This document shows, in pieces, positions 17,497-45,600 of a stretch of DNA of 64,000 bases; within the stretch, counting starts at the first letter, position 1, and each line of letters begins with the position of its first letter. The position numbers and the translations under genes were made by a program. Origin of the DNA: Ruditapes philippinarum (lineage: Eukaryota); the NCBI RefSeq assembly GCF_026571515.1, contig NW_026864029.1, positions 1 to 64,000 of the forward strand. Direction: 5' to 3'. Under the pieces are notes generated by a model that was not told the DNA's origin, searched no databases, and saw only the letters and a program-made list of their open reading frames with translations.

Positions 17497-20400
17497 ATTG
17501 CTTTGTGCTTTTGAATGTTAAGCCGGATGTTTTCAAAATTAATGTTAATTGAACTTAGGAAATTGATTTTCTGTACCGTAATGCTTTACAATGGTTGTTA
17601 TTTATTTTTCTGTATATCCAATAGCCCCAGTTTATGTGTGTCCATCATCTATCCAAAAAGCGCATCACAGGAAAATACCATGCTTTTCATAAATAACAAA
17701 TTAAAAATGTGTTACGAAATGATGATACAGCCAGAAACATGGGCAAGTGCGGACAATGCTTGTAAAGTTAAAGGTGGTCATCTCGTCACTATATCAAGCG
17801 CCACGGACGAGCAAGAAGTATATCAATACGTCCGTTCATATGGACATGAAACATGGATTGGTTTGAATGATGTGAAGACAGAAGAGAAATTTATGTGGAC
17901 ATCTGGTACGTACGTACTCGTGGTTTTAATCTTTATCATTTAACATATATATAGTGTTAAAACAGTATTGCTTTTTGAAAGAATATGAGTATATTGTATA
18001 AGTCTATACATTGCATTCTAGCATATCAATTAACCTGCTGAAAACGATATATATCCAACACAAATTAACAATGCTTTATAGTGTGTGGGCTTTAAAACTT
18101 TTCTCATTCTAAATATTGTTAAAATACGTGAAGTGGTGGATAAGATATTTTCAAATTTAAGATAACTTGGATGTCCGTAACCTATCACCTATCTTCTTCT
18201 AACGCAGTCATTGCAATAAAAAACATCATGAAACAAGCCAGTTCTTACCCCTTTTGGTACCTATTTGGGTGCCGTTGCTTTATGATATTATTGTGGCTGC
18301 TTTTCGTAAAGGTTGTTTATCTATATTTTCATGTTTTATGCTTTTTATTTGTATGAAATGTGTAAGGGAGATGTAATGACTATTTTCATTTCCCTTCATT
18401 ACTCATTTTATTTGTTACAATAATTGGGAATACTACAGGTTTGAAGAAATTGTATATTGGCGCTTATAAAGGTATAAATGAATAAGCTGTGGATGCTTTT
18501 ATTGATTTCAATGATAATTATTTCTGAATGAGAATCATTAAAGATATAATAAACAAAACCTATACATAACTCCTTATTCGGTATTTCAAAAATTATATGT
18601 TTTATAATTATTTTTTATAGGTAAACCTGTTGTGTATTTAAATTGGTACCCAGGCCGGAAGAGTCCTCTTTCTCATGATATAGAGGACTGCGTCGCATTG
18701 GGTCCGAATACTGGGACATGGGAGGATATGGATTGTTCACTGAGACATGCGTATGTCTGTGAATATAGTAAGTGTATTCATATTTCCATATAGCTGATTT
18801 GAAGATATTTATTTACCCAAAACAAATGAATACAGGTTGCGCTACCCTAAATTTTGGTGCGCTACTTTAACGGCTCGGTACCTATTCATTTACATAAAAC
18901 CTTTTTAAGGGTAAAGGGGAAGTTTATCTTTATCCGTCTTTCCCTATTTGGAGAGTTCTAGCTTATGATATGTTAAAATATAACGGAATCGATAAAAATT
19001 TCTTGAAATGGGAAATAAAAATAAATATAAACGACAAAAATAAATACGAACCTACCTGTTAATTAAGGGAACACAACATGATTACTCTGAAAATGTACTA
19101 CTTGTGCAATATATATCCAGTAAGTTTGAACATGACAATCACCATTATAATGCCCTCTCCATGCTTGTTACAGAAGCAGTGATTGGGAACGCCAACGACA
19201 CTAATTGGCAGATGATAACAACATCACAGTCGTCAATATACTCAGATGGTACGGTCATATCTCCACATATCTATCCAATATAATAACTGTAATGTTGAAA
19301 TATATTCCTTTCAAGAACGTTTAGACCTATAACTTCATACCAATTTACAATTGGCCGTTTCAAACGTAGAAAATATGTAGAAAATAATATCTATTAAATT
19401 TTATCTGTTTATTGTAATGCATTTTTATACCTTTATAGAAAATAAACGCCAACAATTGAATCAAAATATTAAAATGTTAAATCGAGATCAACGCCTTGAA
19501 AGACGGAATAACGTCCAAAAGATAGCACAATTACATAATAAAATAATGTTTACTAGCCCATGTAATATACCACTGAATAATAAAGGACAGGGCTTACCCG
19601 TACCCGATCTATTTAACATGTTACACATTTTGTTTGAAACCTTTATACCAGGGAATACTACTCAATGCCCAGCAAACGTCCAATCTGCATCAATGAAAGA
19701 TAATACAGTACTTGGACAATATAAATCCAGTTGTTATGAGCTGATACCAAATATTCGAGTAAGCTGGTCACATGGAGAACAGGTGTGTGTACAGCGGGGA
19801 GGTCACCTTGCATATATCATTGATGCAGACGAGCAAGGCTTTGTGCATCATTTCTTAAGTCGCTATTCCTCAAGACATGCGGTCTGGATTGGTCTTCATG
19901 ACACAAAAATAGAAAACCATTTCGAATGGACGTCAGGTATGATAAATTTAGAAACGTGGTGAGTGAATCTCTGTATTGTTAAGACACGATTTATCGACCT
20001 GTGAGTAGCAGATATACATGATCATAAAAGTAAAGATATATACTATGTAATTGTGGAGCCTTTGTTTTGGGAGGCTTGCACTGGATAAGCATACCTACTG
20101 TTATGATCGATAAATCACAATTTATCTGACCTGTGATATTCGAATAGAAGATAGACGTTTAAGATCAGTGATTGAAGTAGAGATTTACTATGCTATGCAA
20201 TACATGTAGTTGAGCCTTTTTGTCGCCGCCTTTACTTGTTGATCTTGTTTATCATATTTTGCGGTGGGTAACCTTAAATGTGTTTACTTGATACGTGTTG
20301 TTACTGTTGCCCCATAACATTCGCACGTCACATAATACAATGTAGATGTAAGTGCACTGTAAAATATTTACCTGGACACCCTTTGAATAAGGCATTGAGA

Positions 20401-23422: not shown

Positions 23423-26400
23423 ATGATTTTAATTATTTTTATTTATCTGTCTTTGATAAGTGCATACGTTAGGGCGGATTTTGATTGTTTATGTAATTAC
23501 AATGTGGAAAAAAGTGTCCTGGCATCGGTAAGTATACAATTTTTTATGTTTTTCAACAATATGAATATGCCATTACGTGTACTTCATATGTTTATAGATG
23601 GATGAGTAGTTGTCAAGTAAGCCACAGAACGACTGTGCCAATAACGCGCATGTAAACAAACGTACAAATTGACTTTCTACTTAGGACAATGAAGACGTGG
23701 TCAATATATGATTGAAAATAACGAGTTCAAACAGTTCCAATAGAGAACAACAGAAACATTTAAAAGAACACATTTGAAGCACAATTTTAATAATAAATAA
23801 TATTAGTAGTAACAACAACTAAAATATCATGTACATAATTATTTTCTTCCTCACATTAGACTTATTATACAATAGGTTTCGAAAACTTAAATAATTTTTC
23901 TTATATGTAGGCCTCAGAACAAAGCCAACCAATTGGCTACATGTACGAGTTTGACTGTAAACCAACTTTAAGCAAGTCTTTAGCACCGGCAGAGTGGACA
24001 GTGATTGCATATGAACACCAGGTATGTGCATTTGTTTTTGACCTTTACAACGCGTATTATGTAAAATTCACCTGTAATTATGCATTGTTATTTTATAGCT
24101 TTGTGATATGAAAGGTCAACATCATATAGTCATTCTTAATAATTCAGGCCCGTTTTGACATTCAAAATCGCAATTTAACAGATATGTTTATTTTGGATCA
24201 AAACACATTTGCAAATGTGAACATACGTCGATGATCTTTAAAACCTTGCACATGAGATGCAGCGTACGAGGGGAAGTATGAAAATATCCGGACTTTTGAC
24301 TCGTCCTCGAAAACCATTCAACATTTAAAAAAAACATTTCTTCCCTCTTTCAAAATATTCTCCACCTACGTCTACGCACTTTTGCCATCTTCGTGGGAGC
24401 TTTTGTACTCCCGCTGTGAACCATGACGTAAACCTATGTTTTAGGTTCTGTGTAACAGCAGATATCAAAGCCGCCCTGGTCTAATATTTCTTTCCCCCAG
24501 TTCTGGAAACAAATAAAAGTAACAGGGGGCTAGGTCTGGGCTATAAGGAGGGTGAGATTGCCAATTGCCATTTGTAAGAGTTGGTAACCTCCACTGTAGC
24601 TGCTGCGGTATGGGAGGGTGTTATCGTGAAGGGTGACATTTTTCTGGGGACGCATTTGCTTCAGCTTTTCTCTGAGATTTTTCAGAATTACTTCAGAATA
24701 GTACTTGGCGGTGACAGTTTGACCTTTTGGCATGAAATGAGTAAGTATCATTCCTCGTGAATCCAAGAAGGCAACAAGCATGACTTTGCCAGCCGAAGGA
24801 GACAGCTTAAACTTTTTAGGAGGTTGGGAACCAGCTCGTTTCCACTGCTTTGACTGAGCTTTTGTCTCAGGTTCGGAATAATGAACCCACATCTCATCTC
24901 CAGTGATAATGCGGTTCAAAAACTTATCTCCTTCACGATTAAAACGACTTAAATGTTCTTTTGCATTGGTTACTCTGGTTGCCTTTTGATCGAAACACCT
25001 ATCATATATCACAGGGCAAAATACTGTGTATACACAACTTTCTTTGAAAATAAACTGACCACGTTATTGTATAATAAAAGTATATATAATGTGTGTATAT
25101 AGCTGCACGTGGAAAGAGAGGAGCATGAAAAGTCTAGATATTTTCTGACCGTCCCTCGTATGTCTTATGCTTTGGCCAAAAGCTTTAAAACAATTGGCAG
25201 AATTCTTAAAGAAATGTTAGATTGGAAATTTGATACATCAAAATGACAGATTTAAGTACATTACTTTTTTATTTTAAAGACAATACAGCAAGACATTACT
25301 AGTATCGCATAAGCCATTTTATTTAGATTTACTTCTACACATACTCTTGTTTATAAACACTTTAGTCATATATTTTTCAGACAGGCTTTGTTAAAACAGA
25401 TGACAATACAAAAGTCCAAGTTTGCCCAGGCGAAGTATCTCTGGATGACAGATGTAAATTTCATCAAATGCTTATTTATACTTTCAAATTTTAACAACAC
25501 AGAATACTGTATACCAATAACGTTTTGACTTCCTGATTGTAATGTACATTATTACACACATTGAATACTTTGTGATAAATAAATATTTCACAATCATGCA
25601 AATTTTTATCATAAAACTAATAATTTGGAAAATTTAAAAGAAAATTTGACATTGTTGATAGAAGACATAAGATTATAAATTGTAGTATGTAAATAACTTT
25701 GTTGTCATATTGTTTCTGGTCCTTCGGGATCATTGATTCTTGCACGCTAGCAATGTCGCTTGAGAGACGTTACACTTTTTCATTATCTTTTATAAACAGG
25801 CTTTACCAAACTGAGTCTGTATTTTTCATAAAATTTTGTTGTTTTCACTGCTTCAGAAAGATCACCCCTTTGCCATTTTTGTAATGTTATATATATCATA
25901 TTTATTAATTAGTGACGACATTGTCTGCTCCCAATGTACAAACATCAACCTCACCAAGTGTAGAATCAACGACAACCTATGTACAAACTTCAATGTCAAC
26001 ACAGGAATCGACATCAACGGCGGCAGTTATGTCAACAACAACGACAACAGTAAAGTCAACAACACATTTAGCAACAACTTCAGAGACAGCAGTGATGCTT
26101 ACGACAACATCACCTAATCCCACAACTACTGTAGCATCTATTACAGTAACAACTGACAACGGAAATACAACAGGTTCATATACATAAATTTATTCCGCAT
26201 CGAATTTGAAAGAATTGACGTTCATGTGGCCAAAATTTAGAATCACATACAGTCATCAATTCTTAAAACTAATACGGGTTTCTATAATTCCCTAAGGTAT
26301 TTCGAGCAAAACGACTTATGTTGAGGTGAATAGGCGAGAACTTATATATACAATTAACAATTATATTAATACAATATGTACAATAAAATACTAACAGTGT

Positions 26401-30690: not shown

Positions 30691-32641
30691 TCAAGAATTA
30701 CAGTTTGATCCGGGTTTTCTCGTGAACTTTTTCACGAAGCTGCACAGCATGCTCATTACGTTCGCCGTTCCATGAGAGAATGAGGATGTAACTGAAATAT
30801 ACACAAAATATAGTTATAATATTTAATGCTAGTACGTTGTATGGCAGGTTTTTACTGCCCCCGTTATAATTTGTACTTTGGTAAAATCAATTTTAAGTTT
30901 AGTTCGTTTACACCAACACTTTTAGAGAAAGTTATAACGCTAACTTGTAAGAATTTGGTGGAGAAAATCAGTACAGTTAATATACATGTAGTATCAATGT
31001 CTCTGTATTTTACTCCCTTTTAAACCTTTAAATGTACAGTCATTTATGAACATAACACATAACCATTCATTTCGTAATTTAACATGCAGCTTGTCATAAC
31101 CTCGTACGGACTGACCCAAACCTTGTGTTAATAAACATTAGAAATAGCTTCCAGTCAAATCAACTGGGGTAAATTTCCAGAATTGCTATGTACAAAAGGA
31201 GATTCCTCTAATCATTATCAGACTAACTGAAGTATACAGATAAAAGTCATACCACTTTCACAACACCAACATGTTCCACAACCTGGATAATTTCCATTAA
31301 ATCCTTTTGTAAAGTTGCCGTTTCGTTTTTCGCACTGAGCTTTTTCTTTTGCAGTCGATGGCTTTGAGCCCATCTCTCTTCGATCTTCAGACGTCCATTT
31401 ATAGCATTTATACTCCGCTGAGGGTTTGTAGAATTTGTTTTGGGTGAATGTTATAATATTTGATAGTAAATCCTTATATGAACCGTGTCACGTCAAAACC
31501 AACAGAATGGTTTTGCGACCAGCATGGATCCAGACCAGCCTGCGCATTCGCGCAGTCTAATCAGGATCCATGTTGTTCGCTATCAGTTTCTCTACTTGTT
31601 ATAGGGTTTGTAAGCGAACAGCATGGATCCTGATCAGACTGCGCGGATGCGCAGGCTGGTCTGGATCCATGCTGGTCGCAAACCCATTATGTTGGTTTCG
31701 TCGTGACGCGGCTCATATATACCATACATCTATTTGTGTTAAACATCCAAAATTAGTTTCGATTTGCCTATTTATTCTTAAATTATAATAGAAGCAATAA
31801 CGGTTCGTCCCATTAACGATTCGCCACATAGCGTTTTGCCAAATTCTAATTGCAACTAGTCCAGGCAATAGCTATTCAAAATATTTTACCCTTTCAATCA
31901 AACTTATTAATTACCGAAAACAAAATTAAGAAACCCAAAATGGCTGGTTTGGAAGTAAATATTGTCATACTCGTGCGAGTCGTCGTTTACAATATTATTC
32001 TTGCCAACGTCTATAGGTCTTAGAGGATAGACATTTGAGATGTTATATTGCCTATCACTTTTGTTTTTCAAGTAACCTTTAAATCATTCAATTGGGCTTA
32101 ATATCATTTCAGTCCTAGGTGATATGTTCTTTCCTTGTATAAATTAATATCTTAGATTTCGTGTTCTTACCGCCTCACCTAATGCATCAACAACTGAATT
32201 GTAGCAAAAATAAAGCCATTTTCATCGTTAACTTTTTTATCTCAGGTTACACGATTTGGAAGATGTTGGTCATACAGTGTTTGGCATTTAGTAATAAATA
32301 TGTACCAAACTGTTACGCAGCGAATCGCTATGGGACATTTCACAAAAGAGGTAATTCGATATATTACCTTCAGGCGTCTAGTTAGTGTTGAGTAAATGAT
32401 AAAGTTCAAAGTAATAAATAGCAAAATATAAGTAAATAAGTAAAATAGATAAATAAATAAATTGTACATAAAAAAACAACAAAAAATAATTTTAAAAAAA
32501 ATAACAGTACTAAAAATAAATAAAACATTTTATATAAATGAAAGAAAATTAAGAATATAGAAATAACGACATACCGTTTGAACAAGGTACGAAAATGCTG
32601 ATGAAACAAATTATCCATATAACAATAACCCAAGCGTTCAT
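30691..32641 (-). CDS. Small secreted cysteine-rich peptide P1 (110-aa precursor)
   Basis: Exon 1 at 32641-32575: MNAWVIVIWIICFISIFVPCSN (signal peptide). Exon 2 at 31417-31253: AEYKCYKWTSEDRREMGSKPSTAKEKAQCEKRNGNFTKGFNGNYPGCGTCWCCES. Exon 3 at 30791-30691: VTSSFSHGTANVMSMLCSFVKKFTRKPGSNCNS*. Phase-1 GT-AG introns. Confidence 0.85.
31478..31717. mobile_element. Palindromic (foldback) MITE, ~240 bp
   Basis: Inverted arms of ~100 bp around a ~30-bp spacer; near-identical copy at 61748-61986. Confidence 0.85.
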
Positions 32642-34269
32642 TTTAGCAGCTAACAAATAAAAAAATACACTACTCTCGGTCACATTTGCATTAAATGTGA
32701 AAACACTGTTTTTGTACTTCTTTTCTTTATATTTATAAAGTCATCAAACTACATCAATCATTCGTTCGTAAACAATGCAAGTATGGTTAAAGTACATTCC
32801 CAGTTGATGACCTGTAGCTCGTGTATTCCTATCTAATTTCTAATATATCGAAAACACATAAAACGATACGATTTGTTTTAAGATGCACGCTTAATATATC
32901 TGTTTATAACACGGAGAGTTTTTAAAACAGCATAACTATTTTACCTTAAAATCTTAGACATGCATACAACAATAATATGTTATAGGTCAGTGACCTGTGA
33001 AAAAATTAAAGTAAAAGTAGATCGTTTCATATGAACGAATCAGAAACGACAAGAGAAAGTAGAGTATGTCATACGTTTAAGTCAAGATATCGCGTTCAAA
33101 ATGTGTGGAACTTGGATGTACGCGCATAACGATCATAAAAATTTAGATTTATAATTTTGCTGTCACAGCTACCATATTTCCGATTTGCCGAGGTTGTTTA
33201 ATACGACAAATACTCGTACGTATGCTATAATCGTATTTCATTCTTTAGATTCTATAAATAAATAAGTTATATTAAAATCGGCGTGTAGACAAATGTGCTG
33301 GTCTGTAATGTACAGTAATTTCTAGGATTTCTCAGTTCATAAACCACTTGAGGTTGCCCAATATGGCTAAACTTAAAATGTTACAGATTTACAGTTAAAT
33401 GTATTAAGGCACGCTGTCGTCCGCACAATCCTAGGACGGATACATGTTGATTAATTTTGTTTGTTTTGCTCATTAACACAATACAAGTCATATGACGCCG
33501 AAAAAGAAAAGATGAATTTGGCTTATCTTTAGTGTTACAAACTTAAAACAACACTAGCTGTAAGAACCACAACATCTGCTTGAGCTAAGAGTTGCATAGC
33601 CTTTAGTTATTCCAACCCATTAAGTCGCCTATTTTGATCTTGCAGGGATAAACAGTGGCTGAAATTCTGATGCCTCATCCCTTAAAGACAACTCCTCTGC
33701 CACAAAGGGGAACATATTGAATAATACCTTATAAATGGAATGCGGTATTTACATGAAAATTAATATTTCACTATTGATTTATTGCATTTTTCTTTTATTT
33801 TTAAAATGAGGTATAGGGATAAATTTCAATTCATGTGTTGGTTATAAAAAAGCTATTCCTTTATAGATGATCACCTTTAGGTAACCTAAATATAACTGAC
33901 GTGACGTATGTAACATTAATAATACTTGACAACAGCCTACGTGTATATTCACCTGTATATATTGCTCAAAATATATTATGATAATAATTTTGCTACTAGA
34001 AGATGGCATTGTATTTTGCCCATAATTTTTTTTTAATGTGCTCAGCACAAAAGTCAAATGCAACATAACCGGTATGTTACAATAAGAAAAAGCAAAGATC
34101 CCTACAAAACCAAGATCTTCCTTATCTGATTATAATAGAAATTGCACCACAGCACAATTGTTAAGAAAACAACACATGTCAATGGTAAAATCTTTTGTTT
34201 TTCAAATAAGGATCAATCCAATGTTTTATAATATCATCATAATTTAACATATCACAAAATCCATTTGTC

Positions 34270-37200
34270 TTAAGAAAAACACTGTCGATCAGAGATGCCC
34301 GTTATCTTTTTAAGGAGGCTGCACCTCATGTTTAATATGTTTGCCAATCCAAAAGATTCTCTTTTAGCCCCAAGGCTTACTGAAATAAATAAATAAATAA
34401 TCAAAGAATATATAAATAACTAAATAAATACAGTGTAATTGTAAATAAATAAAGTACCAGAAAGAAAGAAACGCTCAATTACACACAAGTTTTTCAATAA
34501 TTGGTATTCTATTGCTTTGAAAAAATATATTGCTGCCCGAGTGGAGATAAAATTGTAGAAAACAATTATTAGTATTATTTATTATGAATATTTACAATGA
34601 CAGCCGTTTTATTAAAATAGTTTTTCAATACGTACAATGGAATGACTAAAGTTTGGCATTTTTTTGCAAAAGTAATGTTTCCGAGTCACATCAAAACGAA
34701 AAATAGCCTCTAAAATACCAATGTAAAACTATAAATCTCTATGAATATAAATATATATACAAAAGATGTATCATTATAAAAAATACTCGGATTAATAAAG
34801 GAGTAAGGATGAATATTAATACATAAATAGATAATGACCATACCTCTTTTACAACACGAGCATGTCTCACAACCTTCATACGTTCCATTATTCTCTTGTG
34901 TAAAGATCAAGTGTCGCTTTTCGCACTGAGCTTTTTCTTTTGCAATAGAAGGTTTCGAACCAATTTCTTTTTGATCTTCGGCTGTCCACTCATAGCATTT
35001 ATACGCCGCTAAAAGATAGTTGTATGAAGAATTCTGTTTAAGAATGTTAGAATAAATCGAAGTATATGAAGCAAGGTAACACGCTTCAACACAAGGTAGG
35101 GTTGGGGTTCCTTTGCCGAGGTAAAAGCCGTTGACTGTTAACCACTTGCCCATATCAAGCGTGAGCTCGAATCCCGTCACAGTCCTACGCATAAACCCGA
35201 GATTTCCAGTTTTCCCCCCAAATTTCCTATCTCTGGCCAGTGATGAGCATTTAATTATAATTACATGGCTTGTCACTGTATCACTGATAGCAGCACCCTA
35301 GAATGTTTTATGATCCTATCATGTTTCAAGAATGTATAGTTTAAGCTTGAGGATATAGAGAACATTTTAGATATAAGGGAAACTACACTGTTGAACCCCC
35401 ACAGTGACATTGACCAGTCTTGTTCGCGACACACCATACATCTATGGTTATTTCATATATAAAAGAAAAATAAAAATCCTTTCATGCATACTGAAATTTC
35501 AGAGCGGACACGACCACCTTCTATATTTATATATAACATAAAAAAATGACAAAGTTCGAACCCCCACAGTGACATTGACCTTAGTCGTAGGAACCCGAGT
35601 CTCGTTCGCGACACACCATACATCTATGGTTATTTCATATAAAAAAAAATAAAATCCTTTCAGAGCGGACACGACCACCACTGTCTATATGTATAAAGCC
35701 TGACGGACTGATAGACTGACATACTGACAGACAGACAGACAGACGGTTCGATTTTAATATGCCACCGGGGGGATAAAAATCATCTAAGTTCAAAGGGGAA
35801 ATAATTTTAGAAATATTCATGCTAGAGTTATGAATCTTGTCACACATGTATAAGGAACATTTATTTTAAGTTAGAAGTATATACCTTAAGAAATAAAGAA
35901 GTAAGTAAAAAAGAAACATTTATGAGGAAAAAATGAGTTTAAGAAATAAAGAAGTAAGTAAAAAGTAACATTACTTGGGGAAAAAAATGAGTTCATGGGG
36001 AGATAATTCTGGAAAAATATTGGTGCTAGAGTTAATTACATTGTCACATATGATGTAGTTGATGGTAAGGAACACATATTTGAAGTTTGAATTCAATCAC
36101 TTATTATTAAATGAAGACGTTAGAGTAAAAAATAAAATTATTTTATGGAAAATTATATGTTCAAGGGGATATAGTTCTGGAAATACTGGGTTTTTGAGTT
36201 TAACACCTTATCACATGATGTGTATGATGATAAGGAATACATGTGTACATGTGAAAATTAATGACCCTTCAGGGCGGGGCCAAATTTTACCCCAGGGCTA
36301 TGATCTGAACAAACTTGATAGACACTCAGTAAAAGATGTTTCATACCAAATATCTAAGCTCTAGCTCTTTGGATTTTTTAAAAGAAGATTTTATAAGGGT
36401 TTTTTTGGTTGCTATGGCCAAAGTTCTGCATTGAACACCTTTGGTAGAGCTTTACGCAAGGAACACTCCTGCAAAGTTTCAACAAATTTGGCTTATTGGT
36501 TTAGGGGTAGAAGTTGTTTAAAGAAATTTTGACCTCAGATGAGCTAATAAAAAAAGTAAGAGATAAAATGTTTACTGCACATAAGCATTAATTTAAAGTA
36601 TGCACGCTGGAGCCGACTTACAAACCGAGGTGAGTAGCACAGCTCTCCATATACTTTATATAGTCGAGCTAATAATAAAAATATCACTTACCTGGTCACT
36701 TAGTTAAGAGTCTTGCACTTTGCAGTAAAAAATTACATCTGTAACAATGTTTGACTTTTTTTGTTTGTTTTTTATCGTGTTATTTTTCCGGGTAGGGCAG
36801 TTCACTCAGTAACATGAGTAACAGTGACACTTAACTATGGAAGTTTATTAATTAAGAAGATGATTATCACTTATACAGGTATTTCATTAAGTAGCTAAAA
36901 TTTATCTTGTGATATTAAGTATATTTACAAATAATTCAAATAATTGCTAAGTTTCACAATTCACTTTGGCCGCAGACTCAGAGAAAAAAATAACATCGAT
37001 AAAAGTGAGTGTATCTTAAGAAATTTGATCCCTCAACGTTAGGGGCCATTAGATAAGAATATACAGAGAGCTAATAATAAATGATGACAAAACTCTCACA
37101 CAGTGGACGTGTTAATGGGAGAAATACAGTTAGTAGTGATCTACTAGCTGATAAGCCCTTACTGAGATTCAGCAGGCTGGAAGGGTTTATGCGTAGGACT

Positions 37201-37905
37201 GGTCAGGGACTTTTGAATCTTTACAAATAGCTCAGAGAACGTCAATAATTCTTCAATGTCCGCTTGTGGTAGAAATAATGCAAGAAAGGCACCTGAGGTC
37301 TTCTTCCACCAATAAAGATGGAAAGTCGCCATATGATTTTAGAAGTGTCGGTGTGTTGCAACTATAACCCGAAATAAAATTTACTAAGACACAATATGCA
37401 AAATATGTCAATCATTTATTATCATTGGAAATTCTTTATTATTGTATTATATTTCAGTGAGGTGTTTCTTTTCTTTTTATTTCTTTTGTTTTGTTGCATT
37501 GTATCCTTTGAGCATTACGTAAGCACTTGACACTTGTTGTAATGTGTAGAAAATTATAAAAAAGCGAGGAGGCTTTAATGTTTTCTACCATATACCTCTA
37601 AAAAGATAGTATTTCTTCAACGTTAACATTTTTATCAAAATCTGACACGTCTTAACATTTTGGGCCGAATCGTATTTATAGCCCGACAAGTCGTTATGAA
37701 GCAATTTGTAATCAAGAAGGCATTTAAATAAAGAATTCGAAATGAAAAAAAAAAGAAAGTTCATATTATTAAACAGCAAAATGATAAAACATGTTATGAA
37801 ATTTTAATGATATAAAATAAATAGAAAAAAACACATACCATTTGAACAATGTATAAAAACGTTAAGGAAACATAATGTCCATATTACAAGGTTCCCAGCG
37901 TTCAT
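34270..37905 (-). CDS. Small secreted cysteine-rich peptide P2 (113-aa precursor)
   Basis: Exon 1 at 37905-37839: MNAGNLVIWTLCFLNVFIHCSN. Exon 2 at 35008-34844: AAYKCYEWTAEDQKEIGSKPSIAKEKAQCEKRHLIFTQENNGTYEGCETCSCCKR. Exon 3 at 34379-34270: VSLGAKRESFGLANILNMRCSLLKKITGISDRQCFS*. Confidence 0.85.
35390..35780. repeat. Interspersed repeat with two ~170-bp core repeats and a (GACA)n tract; possible Helitron/Helentron-type non-autonomous element
   Basis: AACCCCCACAGTGACATTGACC...TCGCGACACACCATACATCTATGG...GAGCGGACACGACCAC occurs twice, followed by a GACA microsatellite and a short GC-rich end. The class assignment is inference. Confidence 0.55.
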
Positions 37906-39005
37906 TATATCCAGAAAACTAAGCAAAAGAAACAAACATACGGTCCTTGGTCACATTTGAATCAGATATAAGAGCATGGTTTAAATTGTTCGTCTTATGT
38001 TAAAGTACTGTCCTGTATTCAGACCAGTCAATTATACACTACTACGCATCAATCTTGATCTTGTGAAAGGTATGTACCTTTATTAAGAAATAAATGAAAC
38101 CATTGAAGTGTATGTGTTTTTATATTAGAAAAAAACAACAACAAATAAAAAAACACAAAAAACAACCTCCCCGAAAAGAAATACCAACAAAAAACAATAC
38201 CCCCCAAAAAAACAAAAAAAAAACAAACAAAAAAACAAAGAACAAACAAAAGACAAGCAACAAAAAAAAAACATGCACTTTTACTTGATAAATATTCATT
38301 TATAAAATAGAAAGTTGAAAATGATTCACCTGAAAAATCGCATCATATTTTGTAATACAGTTGCATAGAGCAAATGCAAAAATATGTTAGTGACCGGTGA
38401 AAAAATATATCAAAAATTATAAGAAGTAAAAGAAGACCGTTTTTAATGAACGCGTCGGCAGCTCACCAAAGAAACAACGGGACAACAAAAATGTGTTTTT
38501 AACGTTATGCATAACGTAATAAATTTAGTTAAAATACAGCCTTAATAAACGTACAAAAATGTGTAGGTTAAAAATGCGAGATTTGAGACATTAAATTAAA
38601 TCCAGTTTTTTCAAGCCCAGGCAGTTTTGTCCGTCAATTTTGTATCGTTAGATAAACTATTTTACTCTCTCAATTACACGTAGATTTAATTTAGTCATAT
38701 TATCATCGGGGCTGAATTATTGCTTCATTTAATCGTTTAACAGCAGTCAAAACAACAACAACAACAACAAAAACATAGCTACAACGCCTTAAATTGCATT
38801 TGCATTAGTTGTTTTTATTTTGAAATTGAATGTAAGACATCGATTCAACTCGAAAAGTTATTGGTTTATGTTGAGCTTACAAAAATCTTTGTTTCTTTTT
38901 CTTTTTGTACACTCGCAGGGATCAAAAGTTGCCCGTTGCTTTCCTATTAGTCATTTAAAGGGTCGACTGTAATACAAAGGCTTTCATGAAACACTGCTTA
39001 TTCTC

Positions 39006-40361
39006 TCAAGTTGAACACAGTGATCCAGGCTTCGTCGTCAACTTTGTAAGGAGACTGCACCTCATTTTTAGTATGATAGACGTTCCATGAGACACTGTAT
39101 TTACAGGTCTTAGAATGCTGACTGAAAAATACAAAGAACGGTACCATGACAATTATGTTTCCAAATGTCTCAACTACAAATAAGTAATACGGGTAAGTTT
39201 TAAGTTTGAGGCGACTTTAGTCATGGACGCCATGAAAACTTGTTTACTGAGTTGTAACAAGTACATGTAATGGGTTAACATCAGACTTTTGTTAACCACC
39301 AATTGTAGTATGTAGAAACAATTATTACGATAACTCGTTGTTTGGTGGGAGAGTTCGGGATGTATTTACGTATTGTATTATGGCACTTTGGTTTGCTATT
39401 TTTCATATTTTATAAACATTGAAAGTTACCATTCTATCATAATAAAGCATGCTGTATGTAATAACTTGTCATCAAGTTATGACGGGCTACTCAAGGCTTG
39501 CATTGCAATGGCAAAAAGTGGAGCAAATTAGAATGTAAAATTTGAAAGCCTCGCCAAACATGACGAAACAAATATATTAATCCAAGATATTATGTCAAGT
39601 TTTACTCTGCTTAAAAAATCGGTAACATTTTACGATATGGTCATACTTCTTTTGCAGCACCTGCATGATCCGCAGCCTATATTCCCTTTATTATCCCCAT
39701 TTGAAAAGATGTTGTGCCGCTTTTCGCACTGGGCTTTTTCTTTGGATACAGAAGGTTTTGTACCCATTTCTTTTTTATCTTCAGCCGTCCATTCATAACA
39801 TTCATACGCCGCTAAAAGATCAAATCAATATTGATTTGAAGGATTTGAAGTTTATCAATAGATAGTTTGAAGCAAAAATGAAATTAAATATTAAATTTGA
39901 ATAAAAAGAAATTGAATTGGTCATTAATGGAAGCTATATTATAACATTAATAATTATGTTGTTATATTTAAAGTGACAACAAACCAAGAAAGAAATATAT
40001 ATCTAAATGGTACAGTTTTATCAATATTATAGATATTTATGGAAAATGTGCCGATAGTAAACCAATCCAATATTTTAAATGTTTATCAAATTATAATTAA
40101 AGGTGGGCAAATCGTTACAAAGCGTATCCCATGAGGAATTGGGCGTTTCACGAACGACGGGCGGCGACTTATTATTATCTTACCCAAAAATTTTCCGTAA
40201 TTGATAATTTAAGAATTATTAAAGAAAGTAGAAAGTTTAGAGTGTTTATTTTTAATACATTGAATAAAAAATGTTTAGAAAATAATATACATACCGTTCG
40301 AACAATGTAGAAAAAGGCTTATGGAACATACCACTTGCAAAATAAAGATCCAAGACTTCAT
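39006..40361 (-). CDS. Small secreted cysteine-rich peptide P3 (115-aa precursor)
   Basis: Exon 1 at 40361-40295: MKSWIFILQVVCSISLFLHCSN. Exon 2 at 39811-39647: AAYECYEWTAEDKKEMGTKPSVSKEKAQCEKRHNIFSNGDNKGNIGCGSCRCCKR. Exon 3 at 39121-39006: ISILRPVNTVSHGTSIILKMRCSLLTKLTTKPGSLCST*. Confidence 0.85.
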
Positions 40362-42635
40362 TTTTTCAGTTATCAGCAAATTAAACAAAAGATAAATACG
40401 CCGCGCTCGGTTGTATTTGCTTTAATGAAAACATCATTTTATAAATTACCTTTTCATAACATGTCGTTATAAAAAATACATCATTCAGCTGTTTGTAAGA
40501 AATGTCAGTCGTACGTATGCATGTTACCAGTTTCTAACCTTTTACCTTTGTACCATAAAGATCTTGAATGTATATCATTTGCATGTTTTTGTTGGTTTTT
40601 TTTGTTCATTTATAAACCATAAATTTTGCTGAAAATAATTATTTAAACAGTAAAAGTTTTAAGTGTTAATTTTCTTTCAACATTTTTGCATAATAGACAG
40701 ACAGTAAAAATGTTTAATAATATGATTATGCATATGGCAAATGCCAAAATAAGTAGGACAGTAAACGGTGATTAAACTGTGTATGTATTTATGACAAGTA
40801 AAAGTAGATCCTTTTTGCTTTTTGTTTTGTTTGCCTTTTGATGACCGCGTCAACAAGTAACTGAAGAAATGACATATTAATAGCTTATAACATATCTCAT
40901 TAAAGTCTCTTTCAATTATGAGAACAAACATGAATCGTGTTAATAATCTTTTTGTTACTACATGTAGGTCAGAAACGTTTCAGCAATACGCTCATCTAAG
41001 ATTTTTATCTAACCATCCTGTTACATCTATCATATCTTTTCTTTCAGCACGAGAAATTTTCCACTTTTATGGTGTTATGTATTTTGTTATTTTATTATTT
41101 AATCTGTTTTTATAGCAAATGGTATTTGAATTTATTTGTGGGTCTTTGCTAAGTTGCTTGCATGTGAACCGTATTGAAACAATGATAATAATATTATTAT
41201 AAAAAATTTGGAATTGTGTTGAAAATGCCTGTAATATTTTGATTTCTGGACATTTTGCATAGTTTATCATATAATCATATTAAAGAAAACACACGTAAAG
41301 TCTACGATATCGAATCAACACTCGTACTACAGCTGTTCCTTTTTGTTCGTGGTCACTCATTTTTCCATGAGATTTAAGTCATATTTATAAATTCCAATGG
41401 AGCAAATATAATAATTTGCTTGAGATTCAATCTCGTTTTATATGAAAGGATGTCAGTCGGTCTCAAATAAAAAAAACTACACTTTCAAGCTACAATTCAG
41501 ATTGTATAATCATTTAACAAAAATTCAATTACTATTAAAGGTAGACTATGATCAAATTTGATATTAGAAAACATTGAAAATTGCAACACAGTATCTTTGT
41601 ACATATAAAATAAACATGTTTTAACTTCATACAAAGTATAATGTTCTTGTGGAAATTCTACACACTATATGGGGAGGGGGGGGGGGGTCACAATATGAGT
41701 ATATTGTATTATTAAAAAAAGGGCTGGGTTTTTTTTAGAAAAGACCAACTTTACTTGATCTGTAATAGGGAACGATCGAAGCTTCCAATACACAGTTTAT
41801 TCATTCTTTATTTCAAATTAGACATATTAGGTAAGACTTTAATAGACTTCAATAAATTTCTGTGAATAAAATATTTTACTTAAGGGTGAGCATAGTTTGC
41901 CTTTAAGTGAAATGAGTACTACGCTTCAATGTAAGAAGATATATGTACGTCGGTCAAAACATCAAAGATTGTGAAATGTTGAAACATTATTTCAGTGCCC
42001 AGTGTTATCTTTAGTAGGTCATAATCCTATCATGTTGTAATTAAATACAAGTAGAAATGTGTTCGTATTAAAGTTTGTATGTGGAAATAATAACCTAGAA
42101 GGAAAAAAGGTAAACAAATGGTTTGATTTTGACGAACATAACCACAGGTTGGAGATGGTGAAGCTGGGGTACTCATGCATGCAAATTAACCGAAACAATT
42201 TGTTCTGCCATTTATTTCTATTGCTTCATTATACACTAGCTGCTAGATTGTTGTAAGGTTCTGTTGATACAATTGTATATCTATCATTGTGACAAGTGTG
42301 TCACTTTTAGTTATTGTCTGTTCTTTATGATTATGACAACAAAAGTGAAAACATATAAAGCAGTGGTTATAAAATAAAAAAAGATATTTAAATTGGAATA
42401 TCACTCTAATTGAAAAAAAAGGAGATAAACATTAAACTTGGATGCCGCCTATAGTAGCAAAATGTGCAAAATGTTTAATTTAACATTGAAGACAATATAA
42501 GATTATATTATACTAACGAACCACTGCTTTTATTCTGAATTAGTATTTCATAGAGTTTCAACTCTAAACTTTTCTCAGAGGAATATTATTGTTAAGATTA
42601 CTTTATGCCATTTACTTAGTTTATTTTCAGATACA

Positions 42636-45600
42636 ATGGATCTGTACAAAAGTAGGGTATTAACGGCGTTATACCTTTTCCTTCAAACTGTGATATGCGA
42701 CTACTCTTGTGTGTGCAATTACAATGTTGAAAAAGCGGTATTTCCATCGGTTAGTCAATGCATTCCATGTTTGATTATATAAACCCGTTCCTAATTTGAA
42801 ATAAGAGGTACCATTGCGCCTTGACAACCAAATAACTGAAAATACTGGCATGGGAAATTTGTTGAAAATCGCAGAAATATCATGGAAAAAGCCACATAAT
42901 TAATGCTCCTTAGCAACGGTTTAATCTGTATTCTAATATTAGCATTACTTGTATTAAATACAATGATTATAGAGAACCAGGAAATGCTTTAGAATGTTTT
43001 TAATATATTCTAAATTTAATGATAACTTAAGTCATACGTTACACGAGATTACATTAAATGCTTTTGTTAAGTCGTTTATACTTTAAATAAACAATTACAA
43101 TGTGTTATGTCACTTTCAGAAATCGGAGCAAGCACAGCCAATTGGTTACATGTATGAGTTTGATTGTAAATATCAGATAGGAACTGGTGACAGTGATAAA
43201 GATTGGATAAGTATTGGTTTTGAACACCAAGTAAGTTAATTAAGCTGTAATACTGACTTATAAAATTTGTGACTTAATCTATTATTGCTTTTGCTTTTGC
43301 TCGGGTTTTCAATTTGTAAACTGGTACAATATTTATATATTTTAAACATTGTACCATATACATTTTCTTCTATAAATGCCTGCGATTTCAACGGTTATTG
43401 CTCACCGTGGTAGTCATTGTATATTGACATAGCTGTTGAAACAAAAATGAAATTTTAGATTTTGATTTTTCAGATTGATAAAATGTTTTTGCATGGCATT
43501 TTGCTTAGTTCTATTATTTATAAAGGACAGGACAGTAGATGTCACCATTTACTTTTAAATAACCAGAAAGCTGTAATAGAATAGGAAAGAAATATGACAG
43601 AATTTGTAAAATTGTAAAATTCCTTCCCACCTTTGTAATCATACTAAAGGGAGAAATGTTGATTGAACTATGAATTTTATATGCATGCAATGTAGATTGG
43701 GTATATAAAGAAAGATGGACAGATAATGGTACAGATATGTGCAGGGAGCCGACCTGATGAAGATCTTGGTACGGCTTTTAGATATTACTTGTTACACATT
43801 AAAAGGATGGATATGAATAGGTTTCAATGGAATGTGTACCAAATATTATTTGATGTCAATCGCAAATAGGAATAAGATTTATTAAGAGCATTGTCATACA
43901 ATATTGCACGGAATAAAGGTCAGATATGCAGCTATCAAGAAGACCGATTGCAAACATGTAAATTTACATAATAAATATTGTCATCATACCACACTTGTGC
44001 TTTAACAACGAAAGGAACGGTGATTGGATTTGTGAGTGTTCATGTAACAGAATAGAAGAGCAAGTAAATATATAACGGGTTTATGCACAGTATCAGTCTA
44101 CAACCATAAGGGTAAAAATAAACAAACAGAATGAAACTTACTATAAATATATATGCCAATGTTTGACAGATTCAAAGGATAATTAGATGAAACAACCTTT
44201 TTGGTTTATTATTCCAAATATTCTGAAAATATAGGACAGTTAATAGCACGGATTTAAATACACTACTGACCAGTACTTGATGTTTTACGAATTCAGAAGT
44301 AATTGCAGCAATCGTGCATAACCACCATATGAATACATATGTTCCCTAATTCAAATGTTACTTTTCAGTGTTGAACTCTGCCTAAGTAGGTGTACTTTCC
44401 AGTACCGTCCATAAACGTTCTGTCAAACCGAGTCTGCATTATTTTAGTATCGATGTTTTGGCGTTCTTTATGGATTCTTTTTTTATTTCAACTTAATGTA
44501 ATAAGAAGTAAAGTATTTATAGTTAAGAAACTTGTCATTGTCTTTTTTCTTTCTTTATTTAAGTAACAACAACACCGGCACCACTAACAACAACACATTT
44601 TGTTACATCCTCTACGACTAAATTATCAACTCCAGAAAAGTCAACAGTATCTACTACATTAACAAAGCAAACGTCTACGACAGACCTGCCGACCACATCT
44701 ACCTTACCAACGCTATCTTCTACAGTGTTACCTTCAACAACTTCAGTTACTCCTTCAACGATACCAGCTTCCACGACAATACCGTCAACAACAATTAATT
44801 CGACCAAATTTTCTTTTCCATATTCTTCGTCTACTAGGATACAAACTACCAAACTTTCAACACCTGTTACATCTCCAAATACTGTTTCATCTTCACACAT
44901 GCCACTCTCCACATTAACTAGAGCTTCTACGACAAGAACAACTACACATACGGCCCAAACAAATGCTACAACTTCAAATTCACCTTCAACCTCAACAACC
45001 CAACAGACTACTTTAAAATCAACAACTTTACCACCAATTGTGACCACAACTTTGCGACCAATACAAACAACTATAGGTAACTTCTTGACCCTACTTTGAT
45101 GTTTTAATATAAGTTGAAATATATACATGTATACATTTAAGCCAGCTTAGGGTAGTGATAAAAGTGTTGTTTACAAAACAATAGAGAAAACAGAGTTCCG
45201 CAAAAAAACAAACACCAAATGACCTCATAATTGAAAATGTTGCAGGTTAAGTTTGAGCCTTTTCATACACAGTAGAGGTGATTGCAAGCTACCGTCTACA
45301 CTTCCTCTTGCACCGATTTAATCCAAATCCGATATATATATACAAGTCAATTATGAAAAATATAAATTAATGTGGTCAAGCAACAATTGAAAACAGTGCA
45401 TTTTTTTTACTATGGTATGTTTATTGTGATCCTTTCGTTGCAAACAATAGAAAATAATTCTTCGTTTGATAGTGTAATATATTTTAAACTTACTTCTTTT
45501 TATTTTGTTACTAGAATTTTTACTATATAACTAACAAATGATATCAGAATAAGTTATCAGATATTTCTGAATAGTGAAAACAAAAATCAATACTTTTTAA

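Follow-up and report, generated by a model that had tools for sequence, protein, structure and literature searches.

Three small genes lie in tandem on the minus strand of a 64,000-nucleotide (nt) stretch of the genome of the clam Ruditapes philippinarum (contig NW_026864029.1, positions 1 to 64,000; called the window here), and their cysteine-rich products raise the question of what kind of protein family they represent. Bivalves rely on innate immunity and have many lineage-specific families of secreted cysteine-rich proteins, most of which are unstudied. The genes, which we refer to as A, B, and C, could constitute a self-contained family of eight-cysteine peptides, as a preliminary description made from the sequence of the window had proposed. 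Alternatively, they might share a module with other proteins. We found that genes A to C are real and intact and that they form a distinct subfamily, combining a domain with a cationic looped tail, of a widespread family of six-cysteine domains.

Three intact tandem genes share one exon plan

Genes A, B, and C are paralogs that occupy positions 30,691 to 40,361 of the window and follow a common plan (Table 1). In our reading of the sequence, each gene consists of three coding exons and encodes a precursor of 110 to 115 amino acids. The preliminary description had reported three intact minus-strand genes, each with a first exon of 67 nt, a second of 165 nt, and a last exon, and all of these models were found as it gave them. 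Exon 3 varies in length and keeps its frame in each gene. All six introns are bounded by GT and AG and lie in phase 1. The first exon ends in each case with CSN and one base of a split alanine codon, exon 2 carries the cysteine pattern C-x23-C-x17-C-x2-C-x-CC, and exon 3 carries C-x13-C-x2-stop; the three genes thus reproduce exactly the spacing given in the preliminary description. The nine exons all retain frame, splice sites, cysteines, and stop position.

Comparison of the three loci by blastn gave matches only in the three exons and in the 70 to 90 nt or so upstream of each ATG, and the introns did not align between loci. A GCAAATGTGACCGAG-like block common to the three genes is found about 40 to 60 nt before each ATG. 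When the whole genome (1.4 gigabases in 15,874 contigs) was searched, the exon 2 translations matched one another with expect values (E) of 2e-18 and 3e-15, an agreement that chance would not produce.

Two of the three genes are represented in RefSeq. The spliced product of gene B is identical, letter for letter, to protein P0001 (XP_060564990.1, LOC132724189, 113 amino acids), and that of gene C is likewise identical to P0157 (LOC132724188, 115 amino acids); both are named as uncharacterized proteins. Contrary to the preliminary description, the family is therefore not hidden for two of its three genes, since genes B and C are already RefSeq models with the same splicing. The product of gene A was not found: it was absent among the candidates of word-indexed protein searches despite sharing several five-residue words with P0001, and it is probably unannotated in RefSeq. 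In comparisons, genes B and C were represented by the database proteins P0001 and P0157, and the exons of gene A were compared separately. A 188-amino-acid open frame (34710-35276, minus strand) crosses exon 2 of gene B and runs into both adjacent introns. The RefSeq product is spliced with the 165-nt exon, which shows that the longer frame is an accident of the AT-rich introns.

Table 1. Exons of genes A to C and the conserved blocks upstream of them, with positions in the window
Feature	Positions	Strand	Description
Gene A exon 1	32575-32641	-	67 nt; start codon and predicted signal peptide, ending ...PCSN plus first base of split Ala codon; GT donor, hydrophobic core; alignable with the first exons of genes B and C
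Gene A exon 2	31253-31417	-	165 nt, phase 1-1; six-Cys domain; AG acceptor, GT donor; E 2.9e-15 versus gene C exon 2
Gene A exon 3	30691-30791	-	101 nt; cationic tail, C-x13-C-x2-stop; E 0.009 versus gene C tail; net charge +4, isoelectric point (pI) 9.9
Gene B exon 1	37839-37905	-	67 nt; predicted signal peptide; identical to P0001 / XP_060564990.1 residues 1-22
Gene B exon 2	34844-35008	-	165 nt; six-Cys domain; E 2.1e-18; identical to P0001 residues 24-77; predicted local distance difference test score (pLDDT) 83-95
Gene B exon 3	34270-34379	-	110 nt; cationic tail, C-x13-C-x2-stop; net charge +4, pI 9.8; low-confidence model with one helix
Gene C exon 1	40295-40361	-	67 nt; predicted signal peptide; identical to P0157 N terminus
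Gene C exon 2	39647-39811	-	165 nt; six-Cys domain; domain-only AlphaFold model with mean pLDDT 90, predicted template modeling score (pTM) 0.69
Gene C exon 3	39006-39121	-	116 nt; cationic tail, C-x13-C-x2-stop; net charge +5, pI 10.3
Conserved 5' block, gene A	32642-32722	-	5' untranslated region or core promoter; blastn match extends past exon 1
Conserved 5' block, gene B	37906-37996	-	Counterpart of gene A 5' block
Conserved 5' block, gene C	40362-40433	-	Counterpart of gene A 5' block

Exon 2 encodes a six-cysteine domain that recurs in the clam genome

Exon 2 of each gene encodes one copy of a 55-residue domain that holds the first six cysteines of the eight-cysteine framework and ends in a motif resembling G-C-G-x-C-W-C-C. 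When exon 2 of gene C and afterward a paralog were used as genome queries, at least 33 related exons of 150 to 165 nt were found, which the exons of the window matched at E 1e-4 to 1e-8 in one direction. The related exons are clustered on contigs C7804, C13710, C5129, C4610, C11504, and C15343 and occur singly elsewhere. Within the clusters (259-294 kb on C7804, 30-58 kb on C13710, and on C5129, C4610, C11504, and C15343), they lie about 400 to 1100 bp apart and form tandem-domain genes. Two copies of the domain contain internal stops (C3400:54300-54458, with two TAA codons, and C4610:32837-32998, with three TAG codons).

The paralogs share the consensus C-[HY]-x-W-T-E-E-D ... C-E ... L-G-Y-T-F-T-Q-G ... 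Y-P-x-C-G-E-C-W-C-C-K-P, with the six cysteines in register. In an alignment of 25 sequences that includes genes A to C, positions C4, W7, T8, E10, D11, C28, C46, C49, C51, and C52 are invariant. The paralogous exons are bounded by splice-like sites, coincide with the limits of the domains in P0002, and represent the domain exons of the RefSeq proteins P0002 and P0004, which have a signal peptide and two or three tandem domains. The exons of the window match the profile over the whole domain, contain the six cysteines together with the W, the T, the E/D-D, the C-E, and the aromatic-T/S pair, and are each a phase 1-1 exon that follows a signal exon.

The nearest relatives of the trio are uncharacterized venerid paralogs, namely, LOC132756058 (P0002, three domains), LOC132728244 (P0004), LOC132728243 (P0019), and LOC128546054 of Mercenaria (P0003, four domains). 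In P0019, a single copy of the domain comes after a PAN-like region that Pfam matched weakly (E 9e-4). In these paralogs, the domain is 33 to 46% identical to that of the trio and conserves W-T-x-E-D, C-E, F-T, and C-G-x-C-x-C-C, and the genes are likewise built from a signal exon and, after it, one phase 1-1 exon of about 165 nt for each domain. They differ from the trio in that they contain two to four domains, end a few residues after the last one, and lack the cationic tail exon with its two cysteines. In a domain tree, which was short and mostly unresolved, genes A to C grouped with P0014, a 67-amino-acid exon-like product from an ENA contig, in a clade separate from the other venerid copies (Shimodaira-Hasegawa-like approximate likelihood ratio test [SH-aLRT] value, 97). 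The proposal of a self-contained eight-cysteine family must thus be divided: the eight-cysteine framework is present in the three genes, but its CxxCxCC core is the end of a widespread six-cysteine domain, and only the two-cysteine tail exon is special to the trio.

The domain occurs in other bivalves, marine metatranscriptomes, and a giant-virus bin

A profile of 25 clam domains, including the exons of the window (profile A1), was scored against 1.84 billion cluster representatives. It matched 174 clusters at E≤1e-3, 31 of them at E≤1e-10; P0001 scored E 3.3e-17, with the window exons being part of the profile. The matches with organism names came from venerid and unionid bivalves, namely, Mercenaria (four domains) and the freshwater mussels Sinanodonta and Potamilus, and further matches came from a catalog of marine eukaryote metatranscriptomes and from ENA, JGI, and Logan contigs. 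Signal-like N termini were seen in relatives with two to four domains from Ruditapes, Mercenaria, Sinanodonta, and Potamilus. The relatives are named only "uncharacterized," "hypothetical," or "Secreted protein," the last being an automatic UniProt label on unionid proteins.

Pfam scans of the longer matches identified Tectonin and Link (P0012, P0026), PAN, TSP1, Ricin B, VWD, and ShK as partners of the domain, and extensin-like regions are also among its partners. In P0104, the domain accompanies an ectodomain of the receptor-L, furin-like, and fn3 types. P0026 (ENA, 1218 amino acids), which has a Tectonin region and an N-terminal membrane anchor, contains the domain at residues ~370-425, apparently inserted in the Link (Xlink) module; in its relative P0012, the Link module is uninterrupted. 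An insertion of this kind is compatible with a domain that has its N and C termini near each other. The mostly extracellular lectin and adhesion partners, the tandem arrays, and this insertion suggest that the domain would be a stable, self-contained binding module.

Two matches have a different setting. The domain is located at the N terminus of a BRCT-containing ATP-dependent DNA ligase (P0115, residues 4-58) and of a PolX-DNA ligase fusion (P0144, residues 4-62), in the latter with both C1 and C4 missing. A scan of IMG/VR found the domain at the end of a 236-amino-acid open reading frame (ORF) (L020:2578-3288, plus strand) on contig GVMAG-M-3300021365-13_000001, which is binned as a giant virus. 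This contig is densely coded, with a GC content of 22 to 29%, and a gene for ATP-dependent phosphoenolpyruvate carboxykinase adjoins the ORF. A tblastn search of a phage collection with the ORF gave no match, and a search of bacterial and archaeal genomes with P0027, whose N terminus looks TadE-like, gave no relative.

The domain has a confident model and a predicted disulfide map

AlphaFold models, built with alignments of 76 to 77 rows, were confident for the domain, both within P0001 (pLDDT, 83 to 95) and for the gene C domain alone (mean pLDDT, 90; pTM, 0.69). The signal peptide of P0001 was poorly modeled. The modeled elements follow the order short strand, two helices, short strand, long loop, and final strand. 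Foldseek searches of PDB with both models, and a Foldseek search of BFVD, returned nothing at E≤0.001. In VIA-align comparisons with 48,161 chains, the full model reached a Z value of at best 2.6 and the domain model one of 2.5, neither of them significant. The weak structural neighbors were fragments of C-type lectin and Link domains and plant defensins, and we regard them as no more than a common arrangement of elements. ESM Atlas gave no usable feature match and structural rows at chance level, and sequence searches of PDB with two profiles and with P0157 gave no match.

The pattern of cysteine loss points to how the cysteines could be paired. All six are retained in 139 of 157 domain instances. 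C1 and C4 are lost together in eight instances, and either is lost alone in none; C3 and C6 are lost together in three, and C3 alone is lost in one. The clam copy L021 likewise lacks C3 and C6. C2 is apparently missing in four instances, of which at least one (P0129) is an alignment shift. From these joint losses we infer the pairing C1-C4, C3-C6, and, by elimination, C2-C5.

The domain and the trio match no named family among those tested

No Pfam family matched the domain, whether the exon translations (E≤10), P0001 (E≤1), or the relatives were scanned. Literature searches by motif, accession number, and topic gave no description of the domain or the genes, and no confident match to a characterized family came from the Pfam, PDB, fold, or literature searches. 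The preliminary description had set the framework apart from those of CS-alpha-beta defensins, big defensins, myticins, mytilins, and macins, and we agree, having found no match to these or to any other named family that could be tested.

Several families were compared individually. WAP (the four-disulfide core of crustins), Kazal, Kunitz, ShK, and knottin-type domains gave no Pfam match with P0001 at E≤1 or with the exon translations at E≤10. CS-alpha-beta defensins of plants, arthropods, and molluscs, which have the signature C...CxxxC...GxC...CxC, resemble the trio in being small, secreted, and disulfide rich and in having a helix tied to a C-terminal strand. Their cysteine pattern differs, however, and no Pfam defensin family matched the exons (E≤10) or P0001 (E≤1); the clam domain lacks the CxxxC helix motif and the GxC...CxC pairing and has two helices rather than one. 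Plant defensins aligned with the models over 35 to 38 residues with a root mean square deviation of 2.0 to 2.9 and Z values of 2.1 to 2.4, far below significance. Big defensins are composed of an N-terminal hydrophobic domain and a β-defensin-like C-terminal domain with closely spaced cysteines that ends in CC, as the clam domain also does. They were rejected because the spacing of the clam domain (x23, x17, x2, x1) differs, no hydrophobic N-terminal domain follows the signal peptide, and there is no Pfam match. The core of C-type lectin-like and Link domains shares with the clam domain the strand-helix-helix...strand order seen in the top structural fragments, and Link co-occurs with the domain in proteins. 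C-type lectin-like domains are twice as large, however, and have a long-loop region and a cysteine pattern that the clam domain lacks; with Z values of 2.0 to 2.6, the likeness is a resemblance only and no evidence of homology.

Two published molluscan families were rejected on their defining cysteine patterns. The MEROPS I84 inhibitors (cvSI, scSI) are also small secreted proteins encoded by tandemly duplicated three-exon genes with phase 1 introns and a six-cysteine module in exon 2 (PMC9198434). They differ in having two such modules, with 12 cysteines divided equally between exons 2 and 3, motifs of the C-X5-C-X4-C-H-C type, and an acidic pI (PMC9198434); the trio has six plus two cysteines in another spacing and no sequence or profile similarity to I84. 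Conceptually, the nearest published case is MgCRP-I of Mytilus galloprovincialis, a bivalve multigene family of small secreted cysteine-rich proteins that was discovered from sequence only and in which, as in the trio, the N-terminal part is conserved, the C-terminal part varies, and no activity has been assigned (PMC4558851). MgCRP-I was rejected on its defining cysteine array, exon number, and KR site: it is found in Mytilus only and has the array C(X3-6)C(X1-7)CC(X3-4)C(X3-5)C, four exons with all cysteines in the last, and a conserved KR site in the pro-region (PMC4558851).

The products combine a constrained domain with a variable cationic tail

The N termini of the three products resemble signal peptides in having a hydrophobic core. 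The split alanine codon yields the sequence S-N-A, which fits the -3/-1 rule, and the mature protein would therefore begin with the residue of the first complete exon 2 codon. The hydrophobic N terminus, the S-N-A site, and the labels of relatives together suggest that the products are secreted.

The tail encoded by exon 3 has a net charge of +4 to +5 and a pI of 9.8 to 10.3. A genome search found no copy of the tail exon beyond genes A to C, with the tail of gene A matching only that of gene C, and Pfam returned only two chance-level matches of the gene C tail to unrelated families. The two tail cysteines most likely bond to each other, closing a 13-residue loop, since in proteins without the tail the six cysteines of the domain are sufficient to complete it.

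Rates of nonsynonymous and synonymous substitution (dN and dS) were compared among genes A to C, with the caveat that all of the dN/dS values are from small samples. Pairwise dS is 0.7 to 1.1, and pairwise dN/dS in exon 2 is 0.24 to 0.31. Within exon 2, the first 29 codons have values of 0.10 to 0.14 and the remaining codons 0.39 to 0.69. The signal exon has values of 0.35 to 0.56, and the tail exon 0.56 to 1.10. The domain exon is thus under purifying selection, and the copies are old yet constrained. The tail evolves almost freely, near neutrality, except for its frame, two cysteines, and stop. Purifying selection, which the preliminary description had proposed for the genes as a whole, therefore applies to exon 2 and not clearly to the last exon.

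Possible functions of the trio products

What might such proteins do? The preliminary description had suggested a defense or effector, inhibitor, or signaling peptide. We consider it slightly more probable than the contrary that the products of genes A to C are humoral or mucosal recognition or defense proteins. In such a role, the protein would be secreted into hemolymph or mucus, the conserved domain would bind a ligand, which might be a glycan or some other polyanionic surface, and the cationic looped tail would strengthen binding to, or act on, the negatively charged surfaces of microbes. Our confidence is moderate for the anatomy of the genes and low for their function.

Several observations weigh against a role in recognition or defense. 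P0115 and P0144 place the domain in an intracellular-looking context, which is a misfit for a purely extracellular lectin-like role; these DNA ligase fusions warn that, instead of a glycan, the domain may bind a polyanion, for example nucleic acid. Binding is deduced only from the neighbors of the domain in distant relatives, and the call of secretion depends on inspection of the sequence and on the labels of relatives. The tail of P0001 was modeled with a pLDDT of only about 50 to 60, with one helix around its first cysteine, and its near-neutral dN/dS could equally mean relaxed constraint. In favor of such a role, the window also contains three open frames with C-type lectin domain matches (153-581, 17515-17943, and 19417-19962, plus strand; Pfam Lectin_C, E 9e-11 to 4e-10), and the trio lies about 10 kb downstream of this small lectin gene cluster; in a lectin-rich genome, however, such neighbors are weak evidence.

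The main rival to a recognition or defense protein is a cathelicidin-like precursor, in which the domain would be a carrier or pro-region and a convertase would cut at the basic pair between exons 2 and 3, freeing the cationic loop tail as an antimicrobial or hormone-like peptide. The sequence CC-K-R where exons 2 and 3 of genes B and C meet and a second K-R inside the gene B tail are consistent with such cleavage, as are the cationic, partly amphipathic character of the tail, its much faster evolution than the domain, and the separate last exon for the variable part, which mirrors known antimicrobial-peptide precursors. However, the basic pair is not kept within the subfamily, gene A having CC-E-S and P0014 CC-M-K, and at the same position between tandem domains, other members of the family have K-P or Q-P, which provides no cleavage site. 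A typical pro-region would also be less constrained than the domain, which many other proteins contain as a self-standing module. We therefore regard a precursor of this kind as unlikely. Near-neutral evolution of the tail, with dN/dS near 1, would also be expected if the copies were inactive or barely expressed and their conservation reflected recent duplication. This explanation is hardly credible, as the copies are old by their dS and yet keep frame, splice sites, cysteines, and stop in every exon, and exon 2 has remained constrained while the introns diverged beyond alignment; the two exons with two or three internal stops show what broken copies look like elsewhere in the genome.

The proteins might instead be structural or matrix components, with the module serving as a cross-linking or packing unit in shell matrix, periostracum, mucus, or adhesive. 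Paralogs in the clam and in Mercenaria are tandem arrays of two to four domains, as many matrix proteins are, and the VWD, TSP1, PAN, and extensin-like partners occur in proteins of the extracellular matrix. Genes A to C, in contrast, have a single domain and none of the low-complexity or repetitive stretches that molluscan matrix proteins typically contain, the relatives in giant-virus bins and DNA-enzyme fusions do not fit, and proteome evidence for such a role was not found; we consider this improbable. Protease inhibition, as by molluscan I84 or other small disulfide-rich inhibitors, is more improbable still. The trio does share traits of I84 genes, being small, secreted, cysteine rich, and tandemly arranged, with three exons and phase 1 introns (PMC9198434), but the 12-cysteine I84 pattern differs in count and motif (PMC9198434), and there is neither a Pfam inhibitor match nor a structural match to inhibitor folds.

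Other features of the window

Elsewhere in the window, a 160-amino-acid open frame (24530-25012, minus strand) matches a DDE fragment of a mariner-type transposase (Pfam Transposase_1, E 2e-18), and a 124-amino-acid open frame (44725-45099, plus strand) is rich in Ser, Thr, and Pro and has a mucin-like appearance with no Pfam match. A scan of the window found no transfer RNA genes. The window includes 153 N, which were left as they are.

Possible implications for bivalve immunity and for the domain family

Genes B and C were already in RefSeq as uncharacterized; the six-cysteine domain family, of which the trio forms a distinct tail-bearing subfamily, has no name in the databases searched. The trio joins the many orphan families of cysteine-rich proteins in bivalves. 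The trio provides a clean and well-delimited example in a farmed species, with a confirmed gene structure, a confident domain model, a predicted disulfide map, and a constrained domain set against a variable cationic tail. A more far-reaching proposal is that genes A to C are founding members of an undescribed class of bivalve host-defense proteins, each joining a recognition domain of new fold with six cysteines to a fast-evolving cationic effector tail closed by a disulfide loop, and that the module is common to marine protists and giant viruses and is carried even on DNA repair enzymes. We offer this proposal tentatively and think it doubtful as a whole. If it were true, the domain would be an ancient and mobile binding domain, unnamed so far, and its ligand would account for why hosts and viruses alike employ it. 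The domain has no Pfam model and no solved relative, although a clam genome holds dozens of copies of it and it also occurs in freshwater mussels, marine metatranscriptomes, a giant-virus-bin contig, and fusions with DNA ligase and PolX. Naming the domain and obtaining one structure and one ligand would annotate hundreds of proteins at once.

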